Shown here: positions 3,480 through 50,300 of the stretch, piece by piece | Numbering within the stretch: the first letter of the stretch is position 1 | Layout: each line of letters opens with the position of its first letter | From: Styela clava | Taxonomy: Eukaryota | Assembly (NCBI RefSeq): GCF_964204865.1 | Contig: NC_135262.1 | Coordinates: 2,232,001 to 2,296,000 of the forward strand | DNA length: 64,000 nucleotides | Reading direction: 5' to 3' | Position numbers and translations under genes: made by a program | The notes under the pieces: model-generated | What the model was told of the DNA's origin: nothing | Databases searched by the model: none | Seen by the model: the letters and a program-made list of their open reading frames with translations, nothing else

Positions 3480-6400
3480 TCCTTGCTAGAGTATGAATGT
3501 GTTGTGAAAAATATCTGATGAAAAGAGATGTCTGTCAAACTAAACCAAAAGAGCAATGCTCAAAAATATGGACACAAAAGTCATCAAGAAGCAGTACAGG
3601 CTCCAACCATTCACAGACTTTGTCTTCTAGACCTTGACAGATCACTCGAAAGCAATGATCGCGAACGCGAACTGTCACAAAGTGTGCAATTTTCAATATT
3701 GAGTCACACAAAAAATTGCTCAAAGCAAGGTCACACGCACTTACTTAGAAGTGAAGGAGATTAATATCTGGGCAAAGTTACAGACATTCACAGAAGTGCC
3801 AAGAGCTACTAAGATTTATAGAAATATAGCATAAAAGCTCAAACTAGTTTTCCATTTCTTGTTCAATCTTTATTGAATATTAAGCTGTGAAGCGCACAAC
3901 TCGCGCTAGATTTTGGTACAGTTCGAACGTTTATATTTTTACTTATTCTGTATTACAGTATTGCTAAGTAAATAATATAAGTGATTAAATACAACATCGA
4001 GCCATGCTCAGATGCAGCGTTACAGAAATTCATTTGTGTTAGTGTGCAGCAAAACTTATGAATGACATACCGGTATAATTGAAGGTTCCATTACATTTGA
4101 ACCCACGTACATTTGAACCCATGACAATTGCACCTGCATACTATTGCACCTATGGAAATTTTGTTGTTGTACGGATAGTTGAACCCATACTAACCCTAGT
4201 TAGTACCCAAAAAGTTGAAAACATATAGTGTTAAACTGTTTCACTCGAGTTTGGCGGGTCATATTAAATCGTTACGTAATTGGCCCGCGGGCCCCGGTTT
4301 GGGGACCCCTGCTGTGGACATTGATGAAATTTCTCTGATTTTAAACTTCATAGGAAAGTCTTGATGGCAATTTCCATCTCCACGTTTTATATTGCTGTGT
4401 ATTACAGTGTTTTCAAAATATTCCAAGTATGTATTTTGTCATGGCCGTTTTTTTTAAGTTGCTTATGTTATGTCTAGGTACGTTTCATTTTTAAATGAAT
4501 GTTTTTTGAGTCACAGATGGTAAATATAGAGTGCGATATTATAATATGCTTAAAATACAGCAAATTTGATACATGTTATATTTTTGAACAGTGATTTCAA
4601 AGTACGACTGAAAAAAGTTCTATGTATTCACATGTTTTTAGTTTGGATGTGATTTGCTTGATTCCTTGTAAATTGATGAGCAGGCCCATGAGATGTCTCG
4701 CGTTTTGTACTTCGGTTATAAGTCTTGCTTGTAGTCCAGTGTTTTGTTTTTATGTTAGTGTGTGTGTTTCGGAGTTTTCAAAATAATCTACCTATGTACA
4801 TAGCACATAGCCCCCCCCCCCGCAAAAAAATCCTACATATTATAAATGCAATTTTGCGGCATTCGCAGAAGTAAGAAGACAAGTAAGTCTGTAGAGAGAT
4901 TTGCTCCCTCCTTAAAAATTGCGGCTCGATACGCTCTTGTGTATGTATATTTTATCATCGCGGGAGTTTTCTGGGTACGTTTCACTAATAAAAGAATCTG
5001 TTCCCGTTGTATTTCTAGTACGATATGAAATTGCGCCTAAAATAGAGAGAAATATATATATATAAATAATGTTTGTTTAGCGAGATTTCTCGCGCTATTA
5101 AACTTTATTTGAAGTCTTGCTCGCTCCCCCGAATTTATATAAAAGTGTGTATTCCAGGGTTTTCAAAATAAACTGTGGATGTATATTTCTATTATTGCCA
5201 GTATTTTGCCTCCATAACCGTGAATTTACTGTTTTGGTATGTTTCGCAATCAAAAGAATGTCTTTCGAGCCCCAGAATATACATAGAACTATATTGAAGC
5301 ACAATATTATTTGCTATGTTTTCACGGCACCGGCTAATCTGATTAGAATCCAAAATAGTACAGAAGTCAGACAAGAGCGCGTGGGTGAAAGTATATGTCA
5401 AAATAAATTGTGATTCATCCAGGTGTCGAAATATATGAAAAATGTTGGCGTTCCAGAAGTGTGCGTACCAATATGGAGGTAACTAATTTTGTTCGCCTGC
5501 TTTTCATCAAGTTGTGTGAATGGACTAAAACCTACGGGCAGGGGGTATATTCACCTGGCTAACACAGACAGTCCCCGAACTCGTAGTAGAACTAAAAAAG
5601 GGAAAATCGGAATGGAATAGCCCTAACCTCAACCTGGTACACACACTACGGGAGTACCAAAATTTTAAAGCAGTGGTTCCCAAACTGTGCGTTGCAAGAT
5701 ATTTCGAAAATGTCGCGAAATTTTAATGCTTTGCTTAAAAACTTATTTCTTATTTTTCCACATTCAGAACTTATGATAATCAAAACGTTTCAACTTATCG
5801 TTGACGGGAAAGTACAACTCGCGGTGTTAGAAATAAATTGAATTGTATGAAAAATTTAGTATGGATATGGGGATTTATAGTAGACGATTATAAGACCTTT
5901 TTGTAGAAATGTATAAGACTTGAGAGAATAATTTAGTCTAGCTTCTGAACTGTTACTGCTGGTTAATTTCGTGTGCGTTGCGAAAAATCAATCCTATGCC
6001 TAAAAGACCTATTTCTTATTTATTCAAATTCTGAACTTCAGAAAATGATTAAGATTGTTAAAATTAACGTTGAGATAGAAGTATGAGTGGCAGTATCGAA
6101 TATTCACGTGCGTTATGACAGTGATTTGCAGCCAGGTTTCTGCGCACCCAGGGGTTCCTGTTCAAAAATTCAAGAGTCTATATTACTATGTATATTGGGG
6201 GCTCCCGAAGTATGCGAACCAAGATGGCGGACATCGGAATGTAATATGTGTACTAGGTTAGGGTTAGGCTATAATTTTAGATATAAATACTACGGGAGGC
6301 TCTTGGCTAGTAATAATAACTAACTAAAATAAGGAAAATTGGAAAGAAATTATCGCCTAACCCTAACCTGTTACCCATGTTACGTTCCGATGTCCGCCAT

Positions 6401-32008: not shown

Positions 32009-35000
32009 GCTTTACTTAACTACTGACATTCAAAAGAGGACGCTGTTCTTGTGGTGGTCGGATACGCTGTAGAGCAAAAACTTATTCAAATCATTTTAGT
32101 TATTAGCGTATGTTTACAAAACTAAATTTAGCGCTAAATTTACAAGGTTACCGAAATTCGGATGCGTTTTTATCGTTATCGGTTTTACAAAATCACGGAT
32201 CGTGTAGAGTGTTTGACTCTCTGCACTACCAATATTGTTCAACGCACCTCAATGTCATCACAATTGTTTCACGGTACCCATTTATGCATCACAATTACAA
32301 TACTCTACACTAGCCATGTTAAGGTCATTAAGGAACAGCGTTTGGGACTTGAAGTCTGTTTTTCAAATATTTTGTCTATGGTACTATCGCTAAATTGAAT
32401 CGATTTATGGAAGCGTTTGGTATAGTAAACTGCATTAGTCTGTTATTGGTCAGCCACTAATTTTTTGATCTATTTTCTAGGATTGTCTTTATCTTAGGCT
32501 AGGACAATTAAGGTTACCGTTAGGTTATAATCTCACTACTAATTTTGGGTATTATGTAGTTTCCCGTGATGTGACGTCGTAGTGACGTAATATTTGAATG
32601 GCGCAGTCTGTTAGGAATGGTTAGGAATAACATATGCAAAAATGGTTATGACAAGTCCGCGAGAAGTACTTGTGGTACCAAACTACACTATACCCTACTA
32701 CTGTTTTTCATATCTTTGTTTCTGTTTACCTTCGATTAGATGGCGATGAATAAGTTCAGTACGATATCACCACAATCTAACACAAGAAGACGAGAGCTCA
32801 AAATAGCCTTTCCGGCACTTGCCCGTTTATTAGATTATTCAGACAGTACAGTCTTCAGTTTTTCCTGGTGGCGTGAAGCATTCGGATGGTAACTTATAGA
32901 AAAGGGGACTAAAGAGCAAGTGGTCATTTCTCTGATATATGAACTTATTACACGCTTGGCGCTCATAACTTATTTTACTTGTGTATCTTTGTGCAATTTG
33001 TGATATATATTCTTTTATTGTATCGTTTGTATTTTATTTTTGTTATCTAAAATGCAGTTTTGTTAGTTTGCACGGTTGGGTAGATTGCTAGGTACGTTTC
33101 TGCATCATTTTTATGTTTTCTCCGGTATTTTTACTCGAGTACAAAGACATCAGGCATGTGAGTATTATTATTATTATTAGTCTAGTCCACTTGAATTCGA
33201 TGATGCGTGTTGGGCAGCATATTCTCATCTAGATATAGAAGTTCTGATTCTGTATATTATGCTCGAATTGTTTTAAGGTAGATTAGACCGCTTTGATCTG
33301 TTTGTTGGATCTATTATTTTCGAATTTTTATTACGATAATACAATCCTTCTGTGGTGAACTATACAATTATGGCGTGCGAATATAGAGGTTAAATTAGTG
33401 TGTATGAATGGAAATATCGTTAAAAGGTGCTGGGCCGCCGTCAAGCAGTTCAATAGTTTTTCTAAGCATCATTTCATTATCGGTTACGTTACTGTAAAGC
33501 GGGGATGTACAGCATATGTCGGTAGGTCGTATAACCAACTTCAGACATCTGGGCCGCACAAAATATTTAGTTTTTTCATACACACAACGAATTTTTAAAA
33601 AATACCACAATGTAAGACAAGATTAAAAAAATCATTATGTATTCCTACCCATGTGAGCGCCTTTTAAACATAAACTGTCGGATTAGGATTTTATATTTGA
33701 TGGAGAAAAATCTGAGAGTTGACAAGGGCCACACTAAATGGCCTAGCGGGTCGGGTCGTGACCCGCGGGCTGCCTGCTGGATCTTAATTACTACCTACAA
33801 TACAATCCAGAAGTGTGTGTACCAATACCTATGGGCAGGGGGTATATTCACTTGGCTAACACAAACAGTTCCCGAACTCGTAATAGAACGAAAATCGGAA
33901 TAAAATTATGGTCTAACCCTAACCCGTCACACACACACTACGGGAATACCGAATAATCACCTCTCAACAACCTAATAGCTGATACCGATGGGCGATGTAA
34001 TCCAGTAATTAAACTCGGGCTGCGCATTTTCGATACAGTCTCATATTTACTTCGAATAATCCTGTTTCTCAAGACAAAAATCTTACTCAATTTACCTAGT
34101 AATTAATTTAGTCGTATTATCGGCATTGAACTCTCTTAGGGTAAATCAGAAGTATGTGAACAAAGTTGGCGGACACCGGAACGTAGATGTGTTTCAGGGT
34201 AGGGTTAGGCCATAATTTCAAGTACAAATACTATGAAAGTCACTTGACTAGTCCCCGAACTCGTGATAAAACTAAAATAGGGGAAATTGGAACAAAATCA
34301 TGGCCTAACCCTAACCTGGTACACATACTACGTTTAGGTGTCCGCCATCTTGGTTCACATACTTCGAGAGTACCAAATATGCACAAAAAAAGACCTGTTG
34401 CGAATAAGTTATAAAATTATATTCGACTTCAACGCAGATATAATAAGAACACTATGTAAAAGTGAACTTGTAAGTACAAATACCTGAACACGCATTTATA
34501 CTGACAAAAACAATGCAAAAATCGTATATTATGCAAATATAAATATTAGGAATAGGAATTTCCCCGCTTCTGTAGCGGGCATGCGGGCTATACCTAAAAA
34601 AGCTGGGACAGTCCGAGTACCGTTTCCAGGTACCCCGATACAGGTTCTGGTGAGTTACCGTATATATAATTTTAGGGAATTTATGGTAAAATATTTCGTT
34701 TTGGTCTTTGTGTCCATGAATTTGAGTATAGTTTCCTTCTATCTCGAATGGCACGAAATATCAAATTGGATAGGAAATTTAAAAAAAACGACTAGATGAC
34801 AGTAACGGCATAATTGCCATCAATTATTGCCTTCGTTAACTTTTATGCATTTTGTGACTCGATATGAAATATCGAATTTTAGACCTTTGCTATTATGTGT
34901 ATTCAGAGAGAATTCTCAAAACTCTAATTTGATACACCTATTGATATGAAGTTGCTTAGTGATTATTAACATTAACAAGTACCTCAAAAAGAGTGCTAAG

Positions 35001-35314
35001 TACTTTTCTATGTGTATTACGGCTTTGAGAAGAATAACTGTCCTGAAGTTGTGGAAGAATGAGTTGCGAAGTCCTCAATGTATAACTTTAATATGTTCAA
35101 ACATGGATAAATTCCATCTTCCAAATATAAAAATAATTTTACGCTAATGGATTGAATGCGGCGAGTTTAAATGAATAGTTTCAAGTTAAGATCAAAAATG
35201 CAATGTTCCGTAATTTTTGTCCGGTTGGTTAATTAGAGATAGTTTCGAACCATAAATGTATATCACTTCCATTCATTTGCACGCGGATAAATGTCGTGTT
35301 CCCCAAATATATAA

Positions 35315-35488
35315 TCATGCAAATGATATTGGATGTGGAAGTGTCTGTATTTTGCTAACTCGAGCAATTTTGATCATTCCTGCCAGTCTATTTTCTTTGT
35401 CAGATTGTCTGTGCATTTCGATCTCTGCGTCTTTCCCTTCCAGTAGTTCCCTCAAATGGGCATTTTCTCTCATCTGCTTGTTTACTCG
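35315..35488 (-). CDS. Gene 2 exon 13 (coiled coil, stop)
   Basis: tttttaaag|RVNKQMRENAHLRELLEGKDAEIEMHRQSDKENRLAGMIKIARVSKIQTLPHPISFA*. Confidence 0.85.
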   Translation of the reverse strand, partial: RVNKQMRENAHLRELLEGKDAEIEMHRQSDKENRLAGMIKIARVSKIQTLPHPISFA

Positions 35489-38400
35489 CTTTAAAAAAAA
35501 TTCAATGACGTCATATTGTGAATTGGAATTCAAAAAGTGATTCAGGAAGCCAATTTATTCGATCAAATTTGAAATTAGATAACTTATCCTATAAAGCGGG
35601 GGTGTGCAACCTTTTTTATTGGCGGGCCAAATACAAGTAACTGGGTGAAGCCGCAGGCCGCACCTTTATTTAATTCAGGCTTTCTGGTAGTTGCAAGCAA
35701 AAAAATTGCCAACTATATTGCTATTGCTAAATTGCTATTGATCTTACGGCTTTATTAGGGGTTCTTGCAGAAATAGTAGATTTAAAACGCATAAACTTCT
35801 GAAGAAACTGCTATTTAAAATTTTTTTGTCACACCGACTTCAAACGAATGCAGTGAGAAACACGTTTTTGTAATATAAATCGTGTATTTTGCAACAGAAT
35901 TTTGCTAGCTTGTTTTGCTAATATGACTGGTATGGGCTTTGCGACGAAAAAGAATAAATACTCGTTTTGCGGGTACACCATTCGAAATTGTTATTTCTCC
36001 GCGGGCCGCACAACTTCTTCTTGCGGGCCGCATTTGGCCCGCGGGCCGCAATTTGCACACCCCTGCTATAAAGTTAAAGCATTAGTTTAACATCGATTTG
36101 GGTGAACATCATATTCAACTTCCACATGCCGCACTTGCCCTGCTTGAAGAAAACTTGTTCAAAAATAAAAGTAGGCGTTTCAAAACATTTATCAGAGAAA
36201 ACGTTGTTACATTGTTGCTAGGATTAACTATACCTTCATTATTCATTCATTTCTACTCATGTTGATATTGAGATAACTATGAAAACGGATTTGAGTTTAT
36301 ATGGGTTGATATGAATTGTATATAGCATAGATAACATTTAGTTGTCTTTTTGAATTCCATTCTCAAAATTGGTATAACAAATACCCACCTTTAATAAATG
36401 TTCGTTTGTTTGACTAATTTGCTGTGCTTTGGTTTCGACTCTCATTTCCATGGATTTGATTTCTTTCTGCGCCTTCTGAACGTAACTCTGACTTGCGTTT
36501 AAATCTCGAGTCTTTTCACGAAGATCCTTCTTCAAGGCTGATATCATTCTATGTAGCTTTTGGATCTGATAAAGCATAGAATGTTCTTATTTTCAATTCT
36601 GACTAACTCTGAAGAAGAAACAAACATATCAAGCAATATTTCATATTGTGGTTACGGCGACCTAGTGGTTATACTTTAAGTCTAACCATGTTTTCGCAGC
36701 ACGCTAAGGTTGTCAAATTCAAGGCGTAATAAAGCTTTTTTCATTGATCTATTAGTTTTCCACGCAATTATGAGATTTACCCTGCACGAAGGAGCGAAAA
36801 CACCCCATAAATATGTTTGAAGTGTACATGCATATTATCCGTCTAAAAGAGAGAGGAAACAGATAGAATAATTAAAACACCACTGGTGACCAGATATCCC
36901 GATTCCTTGATTCGATTGAAACAAAACTGATACTATTTCAATGTGATTGGAAATCAAAAGCCTCCACTAAGAAATTACCAAGTTACCTGGTCCAATAGCA
37001 CAGTTACAAGTTCTTCATTTTCCGGTTTAGTCAGTTTCGTCAAAGTATCTCGGGCTAGTCGGACTCTGCGTTCAAACTTCGCTTCATTCGGGTCGATCTG
37101 AGGGAGAAGTGACGGATCTTCTCTCTTGTATTCGCCGAAATCAACTGTAAATTCATTTAGATATTGTACAAGCTGAAATCTAACGTTAAGTAACCATTTC
37201 GCAGTTTCCCATTTTCTTAAAACAAAATCATACAAACCGTCAACAAAAATATAAAAACTTGCCTTTGGGTGCTCCAGAAGTGTATGTACCAATATCGAGG
37301 TACCTAAATTTGTTCGCCTTCTTTACATCAAGTCGTGTAAAGGGACTGAAACCTATGGGCAGGGGGTATATTCACTTGGCCAACACAGACAGTTCCCGAA
37401 TTCGTAATATAAATAAAATAAAGAAAATCGGAATGAAAATATGTCCTAACCTTATCCTGGTACATACACTACGGGAGTACCTGCATTTGTTTCAAACTAT
37501 CTACATGACGTAACGTTACATTATTATTGCCACAGATTTAATTCTGTAATTTAATTCTTAAGAAATTATAGAATATATTACTAAGCAATTTGAGTATATA
37601 AATCGGTTCTAGTACGATTTACTTTACACAAACCCGTATACGCTTCATATGCAAGGGCACAGGTTTAAATTTATTAGTAATTAACTAATTTATTTCAAAA
37701 CTGGTAAACTACTCGGACTACCCTGTTTGAAATAATACTCATTTAAATGGTATTATTTTGCTGATTTATCAAGTACACTGGACAGATTTCTGTCTTTACA
37801 AAAAGATTGAGTCGTGAGTTGTAAGGCAGTGCTTAAAAAAGACTTGTTCGTGGTAAAGTTGTGGAACGTCTCGCGAAACAAAATAGTTAGATTTTAAAGT
37901 TTTGAGCACAATTACTCAAGACTCAATTCGAGTCATGGGTTATTCGTGTCTCGAGTTGGGGGTTAGGCGATTCCAGGCTGGAAAGACTTCTGTTTTTACA
38001 AAAAGATTGAGTAGAAAGCTATAGAGCATTGCCTGAAAAGGGTTGTTCTGAGTAAAGATGTAAAACGGCTCACGGAAAAATACACTAGAATATTTGAGTT
38101 TGGGGTACTCATGAACTATGTGAACCAAGATGGCGGACACCGGAATGTAGTATGTGTACCTGATTAGAGTTGGGTCATAATTTCAGGTACATATACTACG
38201 GGAGTCATTTGGCTAGTCTTTGAACTTGTAATAGAACCAAAATAGGGGAAATTAGAATATAATTAGGGCCTAACCCTAACCTGGTACACATACTACGTTC
38301 CGGTGTTCACCATCTTGGTTCCCATACTTCCGGAGTACCGAGTTTTGAGTTTAATTATTCAAGCCTGACAATTGTCTCTCTGTGTGTAACTTTACCATAT

Positions 38401-41400
38401 TCAAATATATTCCATAAAACCAACCTCGAGGAAACACATGTTCTTCGTCTTCCTCTGTAATAATTTCCTTTTCAAGGTGTTTGGACTGACTCGGAGTTCG
38501 TCGCTGTATAATTGGTGTTGATATTATTTCCGCTGTAATGTGAGATAGGTAGGATATTATCAGACGATCTATTAGTGCAATGAAAGAAAGACAATTCGAT
38601 TGGCATCGACATTGCATTGATATTAATGACTCAATGTGTGATCCGGACGAAGAAAATTGTGCGGGTCTCCTTCTACGATCTTTTCAGATATGTAGATTTT
38701 AATATTCGTGTTCTTCTGATTGTATTGACAAATTGTATTTGCGTTAAGTCTCGCATCAATTAGTATTTAACTGACGCGGCAGCACAGGAGCGTAGCCAGG
38801 AATTTCCAAAAGTTTTTTTTTTGAAATTTCTAACTTAGCCAAGTTAGATGCTCTGGTCCATACGGGGTGTTTAAGAGCCTTGAAGGTCTAAATGCGTTTG
38901 GAGCTACGAAAATTGCTATGTTTGATACAGAAAAATGCTCTTTCTTTTGATTTACAGTTTAAAAGGAAGGAGAAATTTCGACCCTGGCTACGGCCATGCG
39001 GTACCATAATTGCAGTGCCATCTACATAAGCCCTGGCAATCGGCCTTGTCCTTTTTCGAAGGCCCCACCCTTATTCTAGATATAAAAAATTAAATTTACC
39101 CAGGCTTGCATGACTATTTTAGTGAGATTACTTCAATCTTTATTTTGTATAGTTGGAAGGCAATAAAAAAAATTATTTTCGTTCAATAACCTCATTTCTA
39201 CTCGGACTGGGCCCCGGGCAATTCGTTCCGCAGGCCGTCTTTGCATAATTCTATTCTGGACAATAAATTATTGGAACGAGGCCGGATCATAAATTGAAAT
39301 TTTACACGGATCCATAAAATAGACTTATTGTCTCTAAAATTTCAACTTACTGTGTTGCGCCATAGACGTGTGTGGTAATCTTCTTTGTGATTTTTGTTTT
39401 CTTGTAAGTGGGGGGAGGGTTGGGCCCGCAGGTGCTGTTCTAGCACTTCTAGTGGCAGCTTCTCGCAACTCTGCTTCTCCTGTTTGTGTTTCGGCGGGTA
39501 CTTTATCCTGCAAGTATCCCATACTTTGTGTATACTTGAGTCCGTCAGACCCTGAAAATACATTAGGTGTAAGCGAATTCATTATGATCTGAAAAGTCTT
39601 AGTACATGTCAATAAAGTGTTTCTGAGCAAAAAAAGGAACATATCAAAAATCGTTTTACCGACTGTATCTTAGGATAAGGTAACCTCGTGTAAATGTAGA
39701 CCAGACTCCGTAATTTTTTGTTTTAGAATTAAAATCCCAATATAGAAATGGACGCGTTTGTCTAAGTTAAATTACAGCTCTCGCATTTGCATTTGCTCAC
39801 AAATATCGGATTCCCGTTCTAATAAGTTAATCCCCCCCCCCCTCCCCATTCCACCATGGATCCCGCGGGCCGTAAGTTGCCGACCACTGTCATACAGTAA
39901 CCCACCATGTCTACGGCTGCCTGAATTATAATTGAATTCAGTCCTTGCCAGTCAGTTGTCTTCAATCCCAGTCGATTATAATAAACTAGATAGTATCATA
40001 CCGGGTCGGAAAGTCTTCCTCTCAGACATAGTCTCAGTTCTTAGCATTTGCACTCATTACCTGTTATTTGTACACCTTTGAGACCAAGTGACATTAGTAC
40101 GGGATGGTTTCGTCGAGCGCTATTCACAATCTTCTTTGATACGATGCAGGGCATTTGCATCACTGTGACGTAACCATCATTATTTGCCGATACTTTTGCG
40201 AGATATGTAATCTTAAAATAAAAATTTAGTTCAAGTGAATTATAAGAGTTATGCGGGTAGAAGGCGGACATTTTTTGACCGGGCATTTCTATATGTGCAT
40301 ATCACCCTTTTTAGTGAATTACCCATACCCTCAAGTTGAAATTTATCATTTCATAACTTTTTTTCAAAGCTCACACAAAAGACTCATATATGAGCAAAGT
40401 TACGAGCCACCGTTGAAATATCCGTAAAAATTTAATAGCACATAAACCAGGGTGGTCCAAGGTTGCGAGATTGAAAGGCCGCAAAAATTTTCGAGGAGGT
40501 CTCGCGGGCCGCATTGGGAGAAAATGGTTCTGCGGGTCGCATGGAATGTGTTTGCGGGCAGCATGCGGCCCGTGTGCCAGGGTTTTGACCACCTGACATA
40601 GACTATTCAGCCCATTAACATTGAGACGAAATTGAATTTGTTCGAAGCGCTATTTTCTTTGAAAATTATTCTACTTGTGTTGGATGAATGGCCAGTAATC
40701 TTGCCAGGTCTTCTTTAACACAAGCTAGTCTCGCTCTTCCAAAGCAGTAAACATCTCCATAATGGGAAAAACTGATGGTTGTGTACGTTCCTGTAGCTTC
40801 TTCGGAACCTGCAAAAATGTAAAATAATTGTCTTTGTTAACTCTCAAGTTTTTTGAATATGTTCGCGACCCTCAAGATAAGTTGCTCAATAAACAGTGAA
40901 GTGAAATAGTCGCATACAAAAGTCGAAACTAAGTATAATACTGTGAGTATAATACTGCTACTCTCTTCTGTGATAGAATATTCGAATGTAGGGATGAGAT
41001 TACCCGAATTAGAGTTTCAAATGACTGTGTAATTTAACTTGTATTATGTGGGCAATGTGCATAAATCTTATCCAGTGACAATCTCTGATGTTTTCTATGT
41101 TTTTTTTTTAAATTTAACTTCCGCGCGACCATGATCTGGTCCCGCACGTAGACCAAGTTTTCCTATCATCAAGGTTGTATTCCGGTATGAATCTGAAGCA
41201 TCGCTGTGTGAATTATATTTCTCGTGCTAATGCGAATGACATAAATCAAATTATACATACCTTGTAGAAGATTGTGTAGTGTGGCAATAATCGTTGTGAC
41301 GTCACGTTCTGATGACGCTGGCATGACGTCATAGTTAACGGTAGTTTTGTACTTGGCAACCTCTGGCGCAAACCTTGAAAATGAATCATAGTATGTAACT

Positions 41401-44400
41401 CAAAGTACTGTATTTCCCATCGTATTATATAAGCAATCAGTAGTTTATTTTCCACAATACTGAAAGCGCACTAAATATACAAATTACAATACATTATATT
41501 AAAGCATTTCAGGGTGAGGCGACCCGCGGGAAACCAGATTGGTTATCGAGCAGCGGCACCCATTTATATAACTTGGTTTGTTTTTGGCTGGGGCTACTGG
41601 GGCTAACTGGCACCAATGGGAGACTTGGAGCGTATTGGGTTAGAAGTATCTTACACATCCTGACTCCAAAATATTCAATTTGCTTGCCCTTGCATAAGCA
41701 AATTTTGGGAACATACGCTGTTGGTATAAAACTAAATGCAATGAAAGCCCTCAGATGGCTATTCTAAAATTCAGTTCAATTTCCTATTTTTTGTGTTTCG
41801 CATTTTCGCTCCGTAAATGCTTTTCACAGGTGGCCACAAAATGAGCTATTATCTTCCCCAGTAGGACCAGGATCCCTCATATATAGAATTGTGATACTCC
41901 TGAGTGAGGTGACCACTGAACCATGGCACCTATATGGCACGAAATGAACTCCATTCATGCATTTAAGACAACTCAACAAACGATTACTAAGGATATATTT
42001 CCAATGACGTCAGCAATATTCAAATAACCCGCTCCGCATCCAAAATCCCATATGTGACACTTACTTTTCTAGGAGTCCAATCTTCTGCAGTAAATGTTCC
42101 AATAAGTCTAAATCCATTCTATTAATTTTCCACAGCATTGACAATTCTTCCAATATGCTTTGTAATGAACTGAGATCCTCAATTACTTCTCTTGCAACAT
42201 GAGAAGCCATTCCAATTGCTACTTTGACCTATTTAAGTAAAGCATTATTTGGATTAACAACAAAAATATACAGTCAAAACACTCATTTATTAAGCACTCG
42301 TGTGGACCGTTTCCAATTATTGAAAAGTATATACACGGTCACCATGTAAATGATCACGCCTCAACGACTGTACAATTGCTTGTGCTTAAATGTTATTTAT
42401 ATATGCACATTCATTCCAAAAAGCGAGCTTCTTTTTCGAAAACACTGGAATCTTGCCCGTTTGACATTTTCTACACGATTTATCACATTCTGTATGTGGG
42501 ATGGTTTGTTAGTCGCTCCGTCACACGCCTATCAGAATAAGTATGCGCACGGCAATACAAGTTGTTTTTACACGAGACTTTTCCACATCTTTCACTCCAA
42601 ACAATAAAAACCCTTCATAAGCAGCTACTGGCATGTATCAAAAAACCGCTTCTGGAAGTAGCGAAATCTTTACTTTTAGCATTACATACTCAATTTGCTA
42701 CTCTCTGGACATTCAGTTTGAAACCGCGACGTAAATATTGTTCACTAACTCAAACTATCTAACCATTTGGCCACACATTAAACCGAACCTCAAATTTTTG
42801 AGACATAATCACGATAGAACTATACCTCTAACATTTGTTTGAAAGTTAGATTTGTCGTTTCCTTCCCGATGGCATCAAGTAATTCCCTAAGTGCGGCCAT
42901 TCCTGTTGGTGATCCTCTCGTTTTATCTTCTGCATCGTGATTATCCGCTTGTTTATCCTTGATTCTGACTTTCTTTGTTCCGTGCTTTTCTCTGAAAATT
43001 ATGTATAGGGTGTCCAAAGAGTCTTCTAAACATTTTTTATAATGGCAAAGGAAATTTATCAACACCACATACTAAATTAGACATTAAATGAAGTAAAAAT
43101 ATTGAACAATTACTGATTAAAAAACAACAAACCTGGTGAAGATATATTCAGAACTGACTTCATAACAAAATTAAAATTGCAAAGGGACTTTATAGATCAC
43201 AAATTAAATATTCCCGATATTTGATATAGATTCTTAAATGGAGAAATAATTTACAACAGTGCAATTCGAAAAAATAATCATTCTAAACAATTGAAGTCTT
43301 AAAATAAAGACCTTCAATAAATTCTGTGAACTGCAATAAATTTGATATTTTATTTTTGATCAACTGATGCTTATTAAATTAAAGGCAAAATCAGTATGCC
43401 ATTATATAAATCTATGCCGATCTAAGATGGATATATAGGGTGTACATAAAGTTCCTTTTCAATTTAAATTTCGTTATGTAGTCAGTTCTCAATATATCTT
43501 GACCAGATTTGTTATTTTTAATCAGTAATTGTTCAAGTATTTCTACTTAATTCAATACATCTGTGAGGGCCAAAACAATATATTGCATCGATAGATTCCC
43601 TTTGCAATAGAGAAAAAATTATGACTTTATGGACAACCAATATGTATCAGAAATAATTCAGGCATAGCATGATCATTTCAACTTTAGACCGACAGCTATC
43701 TCGGAATGTGATAAATTGAAATTGCTTTTTCTAATTTGAACTAATTATTCCTATTCTCACAACGTCGGAGATTTACGATCTCGAGCACATATCCAACCCA
43801 TGCTTGTCAGAGCAGCATTAAATAGGCAATGGATTTTTGAATTACCTTCTCTCGTGTCAGCGACGGCTTGGTTAGAGACTTGTTCGAAGCGGAATTGTTT
43901 AAAATCCCTATGCAAATATTTACGTTCGAGAAGTGTGTGTACCAATATCGGGGTAACTAATTTTGTTTGCATACTTTACACCAAGCTGTGTAAAGGAACG
44001 GAAGTCTATGGGCAGGGGGTATATTCACTTGGCTAACAAAGACAGTCCCTGAACTCGTAATAGAGTTAAAAGGAAAATCAGGTTAAAATTATGGCCTAAC
44101 TCTAACCTGGTACACACACTACCCAAGTACTCAAAAACTTACCGCTTTCCCATGATAGGTGCTGTAGATGGTAGTTTGTGTACTTGTCGTAGTTTTGGTG
44201 TAGGCTCCGGAATTGCTGTCGCGTTTTGGCGCTTGTAAGGCTTTAGGGGGCTGTCTATGTTACCCCGAAGTGGGGTTATAAGTGTCACAGCTGTATTAGC
44301 GGGGGTAAAGATCACTCGTTTTTCTATTTCGTTATCTCGTGTTGTTGTAGCGGGTGTTAACAAGTCTGTTCGTTGAACTGTAATAACAGTTTTCGGTTTA

Positions 44401-47303
44401 ACTTCCGGTTCAGGGGGTGAAATTAGTTCCGGTTCAGGTTGTATAGTTACTTCCGGTTCAGATGACGGGGTCACTTCTGGTTTCTTGACCTCTCGTGCTC
44501 GAAGAAGTTTGCTTATCTTGGGCACTCCATCTCTTTTAAGGTTTGCTTTTCCGTCGACGTTAACGACACTCGCACCAGATATTATGCTCCCAGCTGGACC
44601 AAGAACGGAATTATACGGGCTTCTGTGGCCGGTTCTGGAATCAAGTAGAAGTGATTAGGATATACAGGGTTTTCATATAGTCCTTTACAATTTCAATTTG
44701 GTTATGAGGTCAGTTCTCAATATATCCTAACCAGGTTTGTTGTTTTTTAATCGGTAATTGTTTAAGTACTTTTACTTTATTTAAATCATCTGTGAAGGCC
44801 AAAACAATATATGGTATCGATAAATGGACACCCTATATATATTTAATATTTGCTTCTGGGGTCACAGAGACAGAATCGACTTTAAAATGTAATAAAGTAA
44901 TTCAAAAATGTTCCAACACTGTCATTTCAGCAACTGCAAATATCATAATTATCGATCGACGTGAGTTTGTTTGTCTAGCGTGACGAATTAATTCGTCAAA
45001 GTCGTGACAGTCGAGTATTATGGTATCCTGTTACATACAAACACTCGTCTTCCTTCGATAGCTCAGTTGGTAGAGCGGTGGACTGTAGAGGTGGTTGCTC
45101 GGTTATCCATAGGTCGCTGGTTCGAATCCGGCTCGAAGGATATTTTTACGATACCCAGAATTTTTTTTTAATATAAGAAGTATATTTTATAACTCCATAA
45201 TCAGTATGAAGACGATAAATAAATAATAAAAATAGGGATATGTACAGAATTGGCATTTAAAAATAAGTATTTTGGGGAAACACTTTCGAATTTTCTAAGA
45301 TGTATCGAGGGCAAATGCATGTTTAAGTCGTGACACTTATAATAAGATGAAAATAATTTTTTATGTTTGTGACGCAATTGCTAGCATATTAATCATCGTC
45401 GCTTATAAAAAATTGAAATGTTTAAATGTTTTATTTTACGAAGCCCCACATGCTATCTCATAAAATATAATTTGGAAGTGTCTGCCAGTATACATATAGT
45501 GTAGAGCAGGGGTCGGCAACCTTTTTGTCGCTCGCGGTCCAAAAATAAGGGTTGCAAGTCATTGGCGGGCCGCACTTATTTTTTTAGAAAGTTGAAAACC
45601 GAACAGATGATACTTTTTAGAATGAAAATCAAGCGGTGATACATCTCTCGAATATAATATAAATTTATTTCCTCATTGCATTGTATCACAAAAAATTCAG
45701 TTCGAATATTTTAGGCGCCATTGAATCCTTTGCACTTAGCATCAACTTTTCTGTGTTTTGTTGCCTTTTGTAATTATAATTAAATTATAGACTCATCAAG
45801 CGAGTAATTGTGAATTACGTACTTGTTAAATTATAATATAATTTAGTCTGGAATTCTGGAATTCAATATACAGTAGTTATAATCTTAAATAAACCCAATA
45901 CACGAAAAAAATCTAGTCATTACTGTCCTTGAGGTTCAACCTGATTCATCTATTAGTAATAGCCCTCAGATACGTACCGGAATAAATAGCATAAAAGGAG
46001 TATTTACTTGACTGACGATTCCGCTCTCGAAGTTCTTCCTCTGTTGCTTCCTACTCGGAAGACGATATCCCCAGATTTTCTCGGATTCTTCCGAACTGGT
46101 GGCGACGGAGATTGTGGAAGAGAATCTCCCAAGTCGATTCTAAATAATAAAAAAATTCGGGTTTGTTTTTACAAAAAAATTTGTATTAAAATTGGGATCT
46201 GCGCGACTTTGTATATATTTCAATCATTGTTGTAAAGATTTTGTGTAATCGTTGTACTAGATGATAATTAACTAATATTATAACAAATATTCTTAGTGGT
46301 GCTAAATGTGATAAGAATAATTTTTATTTGAATCAATATTCAACATTAAAATTCTTTCGTAGTTCATTTTTCACTGAGTATTTTGTGGTAGTTTCCGACT
46401 TCTCGCGATTTTAAATGGGTCTAGATACTCTTAGGGTGTGACTTTCTTCACCTTATATTCCTAACGAGATATTAGATTTTAGCTTGCCATATTTACCGCT
46501 TTTAATATGCACGTATTGATGTATCTACTCAGCATAACCCAACATATTGATATTCAATACATCATCAGTGCTATCAGTCTTATATTGAAAAGACACATTT
46601 AAACAATGTACCCTGTGCCTCGCCATAGTAGCATATATCATATGCCGGTATCTTATTACATAGGCCATAGTATTTAGACATAAATATGCGTCGCTGAGAT
46701 TTCGAACACGGTTTTTGATACATTGTGTTTCAACCGTATCTCGTAAGGCCATAAAACAGATGTCGCGGACTAATCTATAAGTGCTATATCAGAAATAACG
46801 CACAGCAAAGAGTATGGAAATACTTTTGAATGCAAAAAAAAACAGCATCATTATTCATTGCGACTACAATCAAATTAAACTAATTTATCAATACCTCTAG
46901 CAATTTTTAATAGGTTTGTGGCCCAAATGAAAATGTTTCAATGATCCAGCAGTGGGCCAAGTCCCACCGGTCGAGAACCGGTTCCCTAGTTCTTCCAAAA
47001 TCAGTAGCATAAATTTAGCTGCAACTGTCTCATAAACCTTAGAAATTGACATAATTTTTATGTGTTTTTACATCACCGCACCTATAGAATGCTGAAAAGC
47101 CGGAATATTCTTCCTTCAGCACATTACCTAATTTACCATATCTTAGATGAGATAATGAACTCGATATTTTACATTGTGACTCAAACATAGCTAAATAAAC
47201 ATTAGAAGCACTATGCCATCGCAATCCACAAATCATGACTCAACAAATCAGTTCTGAAAATTATTTTGAAAACGAACCTGAGTTCAAGCTTTCTCGTCGT
47301 CAT
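35315..47303 (-). CDS. Gene 2: uncharacterised 731-aa protein; Pro/Thr-rich N-terminus, death-effector-domain-like region, TRADD-N-like region, C-terminal coiled coil; 13 coding exons
   Basis: Exons 5'->3' on the - strand: 47303-47278, 46139-46008, 44634-44143, 42991-42826, 42228-42065, 41373-41261, 40808-40675, 40211-40061, 39551-39351, 38532-38425, 37144-36987, 36565-36389, 35488-35315. All introns GT..AG, all phases compatible, 2196 nt = 732 codons with no internal stop. Confidence 0.82.
35597..36065. mobile_element. hAT-type MITE in the last intron of gene 2
   Basis: Perfect 8-bp TSD CTATAAAG; near-identical to 9133-9583. Confidence 0.9.
36389..36565 (-). CDS. Gene 2 exon 12 (coiled coil)
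   Basis: ttatcag|IQKLHRMISALKKDLREKTRDLNASQSYVQKAQKEIKSMEMRVETKAQQISQTNEHLLK|gtgggt. Confidence 0.88.
36987..37144 (-). CDS. Gene 2 exon 11
   Basis: tttacag|DFGEYKREDPSLLPQIDPNEAKFERRVRLARDTLTKLTKPENEELVTVLLDQ|gtaact, phase 1/0. Confidence 0.85.
37268..37481. mobile_element. Family A MITE, subfamily B (also 5447-5658, 25340-25512, about 33805-33950, about 43921-44131)
   Basis: Same termini with a different left interior; TSD TGCCTTTG / TGCATTTG; the 5447 copy has AAAATGTT / AAAATTTT. Confidence 0.8.
38104..38339. mobile_element. Family A MITE
   Basis: TSD GAGTTTGG / GAGTTTTG. Confidence 0.85.
38425..38532 (-). CDS. Gene 2 exon 10
   Basis: ttacag|EIISTPIIQRRTPSQSKHLEKEIITEEDEEHVFPR|gttggt, phase 1/1. 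Confidence 0.75.
39351..39551 (-). CDS. Gene 2 exon 9
   Basis: ttttcag|SDGLKYTQSMGYLQDKVP...LPHTSMAQH|gtaagt, phase 1/1. Confidence 0.85.
40061..40211 (-). CDS. Gene 2 exon 8
   Basis: ttttaag|ITYLAKVSANNDGYVTVMQMPCIVSKKIVNSARRNHPVLMSLGLKGVQIT|gtaatg, phase 0/1. Confidence 0.82.
40448..40595. mobile_element. Short hAT-type MITE
   Basis: CAGGGTGGTC / GACCACCTG; TSD ACATAAAC / ACATAGAC. Confidence 0.75.
40675..40808 (-). CDS. Gene 2 exon 7
   Basis: ttgcag|SEEATGTYTTISFSHYGDVYCFGRARLACVKEDLARLLAIHPTQ|gtagaa, phase 1/0. Confidence 0.8.
41261..41373 (-). CDS. Gene 2 exon 6
   Basis: ttttcaag|FAPEVAKYKTTVNYDVMPASSERDVTTIIATLHNLLQ|gtatgt, phase 2/1. Confidence 0.8.
42065..42228 (-). CDS. Gene 2 exon 5 (DED-like core)
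   Basis: aatag|VKVAIGMASHVAREVIEDLSSLQSILEELSMLWKINRMDLDLLEHLLQKIGLLE|gtaagt; not in the ORF track. Confidence 0.85.
42826..42991 (-). CDS. Gene 2 exon 4 (start of DED-like region)
   Basis: ttttcag|EKHGTKKV...MAALRELLDAIGKETTNLTFKQMLE|gtatag. Confidence 0.85.
44143..44634 (-). CDS. Gene 2 exon 3 (EPEV repeats, TP-rich)
   Basis: ttccag|TGHRSPYNSVLG...PEVTPSSEPEVTIQPEPELISPPEPEV...PIMGK|gtaagt; includes ORF 44139-44525. Confidence 0.88.
44664..44834. mobile_element. Tc1/mariner-like MITE family (also about 21512-21717, 43005-43180, 43436-43643, 60640-60840)
   Basis: TA-flanked (C/T)AGGGTGT(C/A)CA-type termini; shared interior GTCAGTTCTCAATATATC...CATCTGTGA(A/G)GGCCAAAACAATATA. Confidence 0.7.
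45052..45140 (+). tRNA. trnY-GUA: tRNA-Tyr(GTA) with a 16-nt intron at 45089-45104
   Basis: CCTTCGATAGCTCAGTTGGTAGAGCGGTGGACT-GTA-G [AGGTGGTTGCTCGGTT] ATCCATAGGTCGCTGGTTCGAATCCGGCTCGAAGGA. Canonical metazoan tRNA-Tyr body, intron at the 37/38 position, intact A and B boxes, 73-nt spliced length. Confidence 0.97.
45143..45147 (+). terminator. RNA polymerase III terminator of tRNA-Tyr
   Basis: TTTTT starting 3 nt after the tRNA 3' end. Confidence 0.8.
46008..46139 (-). CDS. Gene 2 exon 2
   Basis: tttag|IDLGDSLPQSPSPPVRKNPRKSGDIVFRVGSNRGRTSRAESSV|gtaaat, phase 2/2. Confidence 0.78.
47278..47303 (-). CDS. Gene 2 putative start microexon (MTTRKLEL-R)
   Basis: ttatag|A ATG ACG ACG AGA AAG CTT GAA CTC AG|gttcgt; phase 2 fits the next exon. 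Confidence 0.55.
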
Positions 47304-50300
47304 TCTATAATCACGGTTCAATGCGATTCACGTCAATCTCATGACATTCGTGTGAGGGTTGAAAGTAATTATAAACAGCTTTGCTAATATGACAATAGTG
47401 TACAGCTTAACATGTATATAGATTTATATGTATTGTACAACCTGTCTCAATAAAGTCTATACAGTTCGATAGATATAGGAAAATGTACGCAAATATAAAA
47501 CTAAGATACTGTTGGATAGATATTTCTGACTTTTTTTTTATCTTTGTGCAACGTCAGTGGAGATTTTATTCTCATAGATTTTCATTTGAGATCATTAGTT
47601 GACTCAAAATGAATACCCAATTAACGAGTAATGATTTGGTAATAATATTTGTATCATAAAATTACTCTTATAGAGTAAAGTATGTATTACTCAATTTGCA
47701 ATCCTGCAAACGCAAGCAGAGTTTGTATGAAGAAAACTAACACTGAAAAAATTATCAAGTTACGAGCATCGTACTAAATTTCATGCAGGAATCTCATGGA
47801 AGAGCTTCACGTGTGCCTAAGGGACAACACTTTGGTAACTATTGAATTAGATCAGATGTACCATCTTTATATACTTCCGGGAAAAATAAATCTACGCATT
47901 TCCGGTAGCGTGCGGGCTGCATTGAATTCCGCATATAAACGATCGCAACAATATACTTTAAATGATGCTGCACTCGTTCCGTGTTTTGTTATCATAGTTA
48001 CATGTTAATTTTTGCAAACATCTCAAATGTAACTCGTTCGCAACTCAACTATAAATTTAACCACCAGTTACAACAGATCTACTAAATCGCCCGTAACATT
48101 ACTCAGAGAGGGGCATCCTTCCCTTTAGTGTGTGTGAGTGAGACCTCACTCTGAGCACATTCTCTTGAAATGTATTTGGACTCACAGTTTTATCCAGACT
48201 AGACCGGCACCTAGCATTACTCTAAATCGCGCCCGCTTCTTGGAATTTGTCAAGTTTTGCGCCCCACCTCTAAAATAACTAGATAATAATAAGCTACAGA
48301 TAACAGATAGCAAGGCGAAAGTATGCTTTATTTGAAAAAAACATTAAAAATACGTGGATGGGACGTAAATATTGGAATAAATGAAAAGTTTTAAAACAAA
48401 TAAGGCGGGCAAGATCAAATGTAACAAATATTTCTGTTTTGCTCCACGCCATTCATAAAATTGTCTACACCCCGTTGTGGGGCGCGCCCAACCGTTTGAG
48501 ACTCACTGCTCTAAATTCATTTAATTTCACGGCAAGTATTTTATTGCAGCTCAACTATTAAACCTTTCACCTTAAAGTTCGATGCCTCAACTCATACTTA
48601 TTTATTTGCATTGTCACGACAATGAAGGGTTTAAAAGCGTCAGTCACACCTTACAATGTTTACTCTAAGTACATGATTGTGTAGTTTGCGCGATTCCTAA
48701 TCCAATAAATATGAAGTGCCTGACCTCGTGATTGTCAATCGTTACTCCATAGCAGGCGATCTATAATAAATGATTTTCAAGGTTGGGTCAGCGATTTTTT
48801 TCCTATCTTCCTATTCCTATCAAAGACTTGCAACCTGCCATATATTTTCCTTAATCGCGGAATACCCCATGCCAAAACATCAGCCAATAAGACCTGAGAT
48901 CATCAACCTGGTTGGCATAATTAATACGGGTAAATTAAATATCAAATACGCCTATCGAATAATAAACACTATCATATTCTTGAAGTGGGGCAATATGTCA
49001 ATTCTTTCGTGTTTTGCGAAGTATCTCATACAACGATCCCAGAAGTTGACTTGGAACCAAGTTTTTCAAGATAAAAAGGCTATCAGAGTATTCAATGAAT
49101 AGTTTTTCTTACTGCCTATACTTTTAAAGTCGCGTATTTTATCAAATCTTTCTTATTTTGCAAAGTATCTCATACACAGACCCTTTGCTATGAATCGAAC
49201 TGAGGTTTTGCGACCAGCTCGTGTTTGTAACCAAAGAGGGCGGTACATACGATGGTAACCATTGTGTATTCATAAAGAAAAACAAGATTGTATTGTTTGT
49301 GTTTTATTCGGCAACAATGCTAGCGTTGAGACGCTTTATAATGTAATAATCGAGGATAAGTACGTCAATACACAACACTTAGACGAGAATGTTTAGGGAA
49401 CGTGCCGTTTTACTAGTTAAATTCACATAAATATTAAAAATAGGATTCGCATTTTCATTACGAAACCATCCTACGGGGTTATGTATTTTAGGTAATGAGC
49501 GTTTCGCTCTTCACGCGGCTGTGGGCAAGTAGGAAATGTCCTTGAGCGAGTGTATATGCCATCTGTATGCTTAATATTTTTTACAGAATATTGAAGTACT
49601 AGTAGTATTGAAGCAAGATTCGAATTTTTGTTACGGATCCATCCTCTCGGTTTATATACGAATTAATCTCAAAGTAATCTTCTGATTCCAGCGATGAACG
49701 ATTTTTAAAGGTGCTTTATAAATCGAGTTACCCAGCTCTGCCTCCGATTATCATAACAACGACAGTAAATATGAAAACATGTATTAAATACTGTATATTT
49801 CACCTCTAACATGGCACTGAGATAGTAGAAAATACGCAACACATTTACATAGTTTTTCGGCTCAGAAACTCGAAACGTCGGGAAATTTTACATTGTTTTA
49901 TCTAACAACGGTTGTGATTTATTTATTCTTACCACCCCTCAATCCTATATATTAATTATAAATCACGTTATCACATTCATAGTTACTGTCTGACCATCTT
50001 AAAGTATGAATACTCTTCATATTGATATCAAACAGGCTATACATAGGCGACTATAAACAGATATATATATATATACATTTCTAAGTTCCCCTCAGTAATG
50101 GTACGACAATAAAACAATTCTGAATATAACTTACCACGTTCTCGGCTTTGATTTCACTGGACAGTGAAGTTATGTGTCTTTCTTCTGGTAACAAATTAGG
50201 TTTACAATATAATGTTTAGTGTCTGTTATAGAAATAGGGGGGAAAAAAGGTTATGAATGGAAACAAAATCTGTGCTTCGTGAAGGTTTTAACCACTAGTT

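Follow-up and report, generated by a model that had tools for sequence, protein, structure and literature searches.

The window analysed here, a 64,000-nucleotide stretch of contig NC_135262.1 (positions 2,232,001 to 2,296,000 of the forward strand), contains a minus-strand gene of 13 exons that is genuine, expressed and conserved. With little more than even confidence, we read it as a single-copy gene for a modular protein of 731 residues that includes a diverged death effector domain (DED). The protein is predicted to begin with about 220 disorder-prone residues holding one conserved short motif, followed by a helical module of about 85-90 residues, most likely the strongly diverged DED. A conserved linker of about 25 residues would then lead into a compact alpha/beta module, and a disorder-prone basic and acidic linker would connect this to a tail of about 150 residues made up of helix and coiled coil.

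By sequence and phase arithmetic, the 13 exons form a chain with no internal stop in which all 12 introns run from GT to AG. The start ATG is at 47303 and the stop at 35315 (all positions are those of the window), and the coding length is 2196 nt, that is, 731 codons plus the stop. The codon count and the start and stop coordinates are those of the original prediction, and the peptide then given for exons 4 to 6 agrees exon by exon with our translations. A search of positions 33000-48000 with ARAGORN detected no tRNA.

The central part of the gene is seen in transcripts. Read contigs from four runs of three studies (X1, X2, X3 and X5) were placed on positions 37000-42999; the runs are labelled RNA by guess, and the intron-less GT-AG joints of their contigs are what RNA gives. 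In each run, one long transcript-like contig (2175-3170 nt) spans exons 4 to 11 and skips the same seven introns, whose ends read CT..AC on the plus strand. Six of the joints are present in all four runs and the joint 40211/40675 in three; at this joint, the X5 contig has the same two pieces displaced by one base, with 12 differences. The RNA fixes eight exons and seven junctions (exon 11 from its acceptor at 37144 onward). Within exons, 11 of the 14 differences between contigs and window are synonymous, each taken singly. Nine small runs carry 11-21% of the sampled words of 36300-44700, about the exon fraction, while four large runs carry 75-91%.

Arithmetic carries the transcript further upstream. 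The X1 contig continues for 624 nt beyond exon 4, a length for which exons 2 and 3 would together account exactly (132 + 492), and the X2 contig extends 24 nt past exon 2 (letters there not inspected). At the 3' end, the X1 contig lands by the same arithmetic in an interspersed repeat (see below) and is uninformative on the poly(A) site. As a separate observation, exon 7 (40675-40808) shows 12 differences from the window over 131 positions in the X5 contig and none in the X1, X2 and X3 contigs. Four of the six listed X5 differences are synonymous, and the pattern resembles a divergent haplotype limited to a single exon.

The gene is also conserved at the protein level. With exon 11 as query (36988-37214, with 23 intron-derived residues at its start), phmmer returned nine real matches among 1.84 billion representatives, all aligning to the exon part only. 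Eight of these are short open reading frames (ORFs) that read on into the intron and are therefore from genomic contigs. The ninth and only named relative, P0008 (UniRef H2Z5M0), is an uncharacterised partial protein of 272 residues from Ciona savignyi, because of which we regard the lineage of the gene as probably ascidian, or else that of another tunicate. In exon-by-exon BLASTP, exons 8, 9, 11, 12 and 13 are collinear on P0008: residues 20-50 of exon 8 match its residues 1-31 (68% identity), exon 9 its residues 33-90 (57%), exon 12 its residues 162-220 (71%) and exon 13 its residues 221-268 (37.5%). Exon 10 has no BLASTP match on this protein. Exons 11, 12 and 13 abut exactly on P0008, which makes two more junctions collinear.

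A metagenome scan with the exon-11 alignment recovered two further loci, L006 and L007, which carry the orthologous gene from an animal further removed (exon 11 is 36% identical) and keep the order of exons 3 to 13 seen in the window. Identity to L007 is 46% in exon 5 and 31% in exon 13, and it reaches 59% in exon 7 and 58% in exon 8; these two exons, in L007 as in the window, encode the alpha/beta module, which at about 100 residues is the best-conserved part of the protein. In exon 4 (18%), conserved columns are found only from residue 33 on, in the last 23 or so residues. Exon 3 is unconserved except at the motif TPLRGNxDSPLKPYK, where 15 of 19 residues are identical.

The helical module itself led to further relatives. 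A protein homologue search with the exon-5 frame found one, P0011, and a profile search added four (P0012-P0015) in which exons 5 and 6 are fused, as they are in L007 (single exon, 5452-5728). A metagenome scan with exon 5 alone gave no relative, and a protein homologue search with P0008 matched only P0008 itself. Altogether, the orthologous gene is found in at least six other sources. Exons 5, 7, 8 and 11 have no detectable paralogues in the gene's own genome, indicating a single copy. The intron between exons 5 and 6 (41374-42064) varies among these relatives: it is present in the window and, judging from a read-through tail, in the species of P0011, and it is absent in L007 and three other species (P0013-P0015). 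An intron has thus been either gained or lost within the DED-like module.

The original prediction had recognised the length and hydrophobic pattern of a DED in the peptide of exons 4 to 6. Our searches were run exon by exon, and a match to the Pfam DED profile (PF01335, curated cut-off 35.9 bits) can span only positions 24-70 of 82, because helices 1 and 2 lie on another exon. Exon 5 matches this profile at positions 27-68 with 18.7 bits (E 0.0021); over all exons of the gene, Pfam returned nothing besides this match and coiled-coil noise. DED is, moreover, the best Pfam match in all seven orthologous exon-5(-6) pieces, at 15.3-22.8 bits (E 0.0021, 2.1e-4, 4e-4, 0.0017, 0.0026, 1.1e-4 and 0.024), always in one register that begins at profile position 24-29 and ends at 68-70. 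Profile-profile alignment of the family with the three DEDs of its own genome (in a FADD-like and a caspase-8-like protein) was made with hhalign and gave a score of 22.8 over 47 columns, again in the Pfam register. This score was reached by none of 300 template-column shuffles, one of 300 query-column shuffles and one of 150 block shuffles. Reversed profiles scored 8.5-10.2, and the coiled coil of exon 12 reached 9.6 with the DEDs and 8.3 with the family. The similarity to bona fide DEDs is weak but statistically specific.

Solved structures point in the same direction. When the family profile is compared with the Protein Data Bank (PDB), tandem-DED chains of c-FLIP occupy the top four of 12 rows and five of the 12 in all, aligning over DED2 residues 116-179 at a non-significant E of about 0.09. 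The top rows shift as relatives are added, from coiled-coil proteins to the c-FLIP DED, which first takes five of 10 rows and then the positions just given. Conservation sets in with the last 23 or so residues of exon 4, which gives the module the size of a DED. From these comparisons, we consider the helical module, from the end of exon 4 to the start of exon 6, moderately likely to be a true but strongly diverged DED. The DED call is a fair lead and partly supported: the similarity is repeatable and specific, but it always falls below the cut-off.

The C-terminal coiled coil that had been predicted is real. In exon 12, which contains no Pro or Gly, a/d positions are 71% hydrophobic compared with 7% elsewhere, none of 2000 shuffles reaches the heptad score, and coiled-coil families are the only Pfam matches, weak ones. 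Taken by itself, exon 13 has no significant heptad, its score being reached in 898 of 2000 shuffles. Both exon 11 and exon 13 are conserved and have a helical composition. The remaining regions, namely the N-terminal 220 or so residues and exons 9 and 10, consist of 67-77% polar or disorder-prone residues (exon 3 67%, exon 9 68%) and hold two conserved short motifs, the one noted above in exon 3 and that of exon 9 (Table 1).

The main rival to a diverged DED is that the helical module is a long hydrophobic amphipathic helix, serving as a coiled-coil or bundle oligomerisation segment, whose likeness to DED helices 3-5 is convergent. The protein would then be a scaffold with two coiled coils and a small alpha/beta domain (cytoskeletal, centrosomal or trafficking) and unrelated to caspase-8 signalling. 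We judge this possible, though less likely; the following results speak for it or against a DED. None of the seven DED scores reaches the cut-off (the best is 22.8 bits), and the seven matches are not independent, because one invariant motif drives them all. In a six-frame DED scan of the whole genome, this locus comes sixth among eight matches, at 16.4 bits (E 3.2), on a par with two that are probably due to chance. The hhalign probabilities are low (9%, 45.5% and 17-20%), all PDB E-values are 0.09 or worse, and phmmer searches of the PDB with exon 5 alone or with a two-row profile place coiled-coil proteins (BicD, LGE1, Brk1) on top and return no DED chain. Exons 4 and 6 alone give no detectable Pfam DED signal, and even in the relatives with exons 5 and 6 fused, the match stops at profile position 70 of 82. 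AlphaFold2 folds exon 5 alone (with P0011) as one helix over residues 2-49 (pLDDT 89), whereas the same-position fragment of the genome's FADD DED breaks into four to five helices (pLDDT 65). A single a/d heptad register also runs without a break through exon 5 of the window (52 of 2000 shuffles score as high), and no such register is present in the three true DEDs of the genome (1044-1817 of 2000 shuffles score as high). The R-x-D-L of helix 6 (charge triad) is a hallmark of DEDs and reads RLDL in the FADD-like protein, RMDL in caspase DED1 and RIDL in c-FLIP; in the matched register, G-(L/M/E)-(L/V/F)-E stands at this site. An invariant N-R-x-D-L is present one helix earlier in the family, and given this the helix-6 site may lie in a different register. 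For the C-terminal half, the language-model neighbours are coiled-coil proteins of centrosome and testis that are mutually inconsistent, and the look-alikes returned by ESM Atlas for exon 5 and for P0008 form no consistent family. There is also a precedent in name, as "pseudo death effector domain" is used for HIPPI (PMC2817453).

Other features of the module fit poorly with a single long coil. The unbroken heptad is not conserved in L007 (487 of 2000 shuffles score as high), and we rejected the exon 5 heptad of the window as proof of a coiled coil for this reason. Relatives have a Pro at the predicted turn between helices 2 and 3 (four of seven rows), and L007 has a Gly further on as well. 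The residues L, I, V, M, F and W make up 46% of exon 5 compared with 25% of exon 12, a composition more in keeping with a buried bundle than with a two-stranded coil. The specificity of the hhalign score relative to exon 12 and the passage of the top PDB rows from coiled coils to c-FLIP DED2 likewise argue for a DED. A different alternative keeps the DED and makes the gene a fast-evolving counterpart of DEDD/DEDD2 (FLAME-3), a member of the DED + TRADD-N clade with added disorder and coiled coil. DEDD2 has an N-terminal DED followed by TRADD-N, a unit kept constant with variable flanks in large expansions of cnidarians, bivalves, echinoderms, hemichordates and cephalochordates (Kaur, Iyer, Burroughs and Aravind 2021, eLife; PMC8195603). 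The placement agrees, with the alpha/beta module beginning about 25 residues after the DED-like module, although this is a likeness of position and not of identity, and the genome has no strong DEDD-like DED elsewhere, only FADD-like and caspase-like DEDs being above the cut-off. We nevertheless regard this alternative as improbable. The TRADD-N-like character originally ascribed to exons 7 and 8 finds no support in any search: Pfam including TRADD_N (PF09034) gives no match up to E 10 for these exons in the window or L007, a TRADD_N scan of the genome does not pick up this locus and has a single weak match at another place, and PDB searches with single sequences and two-row profiles of the two exons find no TRADD. 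Such a sequence test is weak, because the published invertebrate TRADD-N members required iterative and profile-profile searches (PMC8195603). Judged by eye, the likely order of elements (strand, strand, helix, strand, strand, helix, strand) is no worse a fit to a beta-grasp than to an RRM-like TRADD-N; no search result backs any particular fold for the module, which also tells against the reading we prefer. Furthermore, the text of PMC8195603 names no tunicates among the lineages with DEDD2 orthologues, and the true counterpart of DEDD could be a weak DED-like exon elsewhere in the genome (G000 C4:16817271-16817432, 23.5 bits). The idea that the gene model is spurious, with open frames chained by chance or a transcript that does not code, is close to refuted. 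Exons 1-3, 12 and 13 lie outside the RNA region and the RNA labels are guesses, but the seven GT-AG joints recur across the four runs, 731 codons over 13 exons contain no stop, most exonic differences are synonymous, and protein-level conservation is collinear in C. savignyi and L007.

If the helical module is a diverged DED, the architecture suggests how the protein could act. The coiled coil would form dimers or higher oligomers, which would cluster the DED-like heads and thereby allow them to join, seed or cap DED assemblies of FADD-like and caspase-8-like proteins, while the alpha/beta module and the conserved linear motifs could bind further partners. The protein may thus be an extra cell-death adaptor. 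In a stronger and rather unlikely version, it would be a previously unrecognised single-DED regulator, in which a DED head and a new alpha/beta domain are oligomerised by the coiled coil to seed or cap FADD-caspase-8 filaments, as an independently evolved stand-in for c-FLIP or as an activator, in a chordate lineage from which c-FLIP has not been reported. This working model is the same as that of CARD9 and CARMA, in which a death-fold head is joined to a coiled coil that oligomerises it and the head nucleates a homotypic filament. Here the head would be a DED and not a CARD, and the order is disordered N-terminus, head, alpha/beta module, coil; we detected no sequence relation to CARD9 or CARMA.

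According to the original prediction, the architecture is that of no known DED protein (FADD, caspase-8/10, c-FLIP, PEA-15 or DEDD). This is too strong, as DED followed by TRADD-N is published, and the architecture is at most a variation on a published DED + alpha/beta theme and not a new class; the coiled-coil tail and the family itself are not described in the text of PMC8195603. Our literature search likewise found no DED + alpha/beta + coiled-coil protein described in tunicates, although the source-data tables of that paper may list such proteins. With the DEDD2-type dyads, the protein shares a DED-like helical module followed by a small conserved alpha/beta module, variable flanks and a proposed role as an adaptor in apoptosis or immunity. 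It differs, in a comparison with DEDD/DEDD2 made by description only, in that a TRADD-N identity is unsupported, in being single-copy and not part of a lineage-specific expansion, and in its 220-residue disordered N-terminus and 150-residue coiled-coil tail, neither of which is mentioned in the text of that source.

The best match among solved structures is DED2 of c-FLIP (CFLAR; 8ym6, 8ybx, 8yd7), which aligns over 62 columns up to a shared Y-K just past the domain. Like c-FLIP, the protein has a DED-like module and no active caspase. It differs in that the E-value is not significant, the R-x-D-L of c-FLIP aligns with G-L-L-E, and the DED-like module is single, not tandem, and without a caspase-like domain. 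Orthologues of c-FLIP are reported absent from Ciona (PMC5668880).

A caution comes from HIP1 and HIPPI/IFT57, where a DED-like similarity lies inside a helical, coiled-coil-rich protein and need not mean a death fold; the pseudo-DED segment of HIP1 is a coiled coil in crystals. Neither Pfam family turned up in any of our scans, and we found no sequence relation to the present protein.

Within its own genome, the protein shares the specific profile-profile match described above with FADD and caspase-8/10. The scores differ widely, at 69-72 bits for the FADD-like DED and 68 and 37 bits for the caspase DEDs compared with 16-19 bits at this locus, and the protein has neither a death domain nor a caspase domain. 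One FADD-like ORF and one tandem-DED caspase-8-like ORF are all that the genome has above the DED cut-off, and a single DED caspase, Ci-caspase 8/10, is reported in ascidians (PMC10923776). If the DED reading is true, a conserved, expressed, single-copy third DED-like protein on an oligomerising stalk would be a candidate regulator of a minimal extrinsic death pathway. If the module is not a death fold, the gene would encode an unnamed lineage-specific coiled-coil protein and be an example of how far sub-threshold DED similarity can mislead.

Table 1. Exons of the 13-exon gene, with positions in the window
Feature	Position	Strand	Description and basis
Exon 1 (putative)	47278..47303	-	ATG and 26 nt coding, donor GT; basis is sequence and phase alone
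Exon 2	46008..46139	-	132 nt, polar, Ser/Pro/Arg-rich; AG/GT ends, in phase
Exon 3	44143..44634	-	492 nt, disorder-prone, Pro/Glu/Lys/Thr-rich; AG/GT ends, in phase
Exon 4	42826..42991	-	First ~30 codons unconserved; conserved over the last ~23, where the helical module starts
Exon 4, last ~23 codons	within 42826..42991	-	Putative DED helices 1-2; joint 42226/42824 (+2) in 4/4 runs
Exon 5	42065..42228	-	Core of the DED-like module, invariant WKINRxDLDLLE motif; RNA joints on both sides, 4/4 runs
Exon 6	41261..41373	-	End of the helical module and conserved linker (SERE/DVTTII..LH..LQ); RNA joints, 4/4 runs
Exon 7	40675..40808	-	First half of the conserved alpha/beta module (originally called TRADD-N-like); RNA joints
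Exon 8	40061..40211	-	Second half of the alpha/beta module; RNA joints
Exon 9	39351..39551	-	Conserved SDGL(K/R)YTQS(M/L)GYLQ motif, then disorder-prone basic linker; RNA joints, 4/4 runs
Exon 10	38425..38532	-	Acidic and polar linker; RNA joints, 4/4 runs
Exon 11	36987..37144	-	Helical segment ahead of the coiled coil, conserved (DPxEAKFERR...VLL(D/E)Q)
Exon 11, ends	acceptor 37144; donor 36987		Acceptor from RNA, 4/4 runs; donor from sequence and exact abutment on P0008
Exon 12	36389..36565	-	Coiled coil
Exon 13	35315..35488	-	Coding part and stop; helical/coiled-coil tail continues; 3' UTR runs on downstream

The other DED genes of the genome are organised differently from the 13-exon gene. 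The FADD-like gene (G000 C4:6114367-6115266; L002 968-1867) is one ORF of 299 codons with a DED of 69 bits and the start of a death domain, and the caspase-8-like gene (G000 C1:9833752-9836334; L003 753-3335) has its tandem DED in one uninterrupted ORF of 860 codons, so that both are intron-poor. The weak third DED-like exon mentioned above (L004 745-939) matches profile positions 3-55 in an ORF of 64 codons; it could be part of DEDD, PEA-15 or another death-fold gene.

Two kinds of repeat lie in and around the gene. An interspersed repeat occurs in its introns and downstream of it (33827-34374, 37273-37469, 38100-38339 and 43926-44119; direct-repeat families D1-D4 and D8), and includes an inverted pair, 38104-38182 and 38261-38339. 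Among the transcript-like contigs, bins with copies of this repeat have a summed depth of about 4,600-32,000 compared with 4-22 for the exons; the repeat is thus extremely abundant in RNA assemblies, where many transcripts probably contain it. The second repeat, with a GC-rich core that translates as ...GPHAA...LCGP..., is found twice in the introns of the gene (35905-36085 and 40371-40606) and again at the orthologous loci of the distant relative (L006 5512-5634 and L007 11046-11200), and looks like a SINE-like element shared across species.

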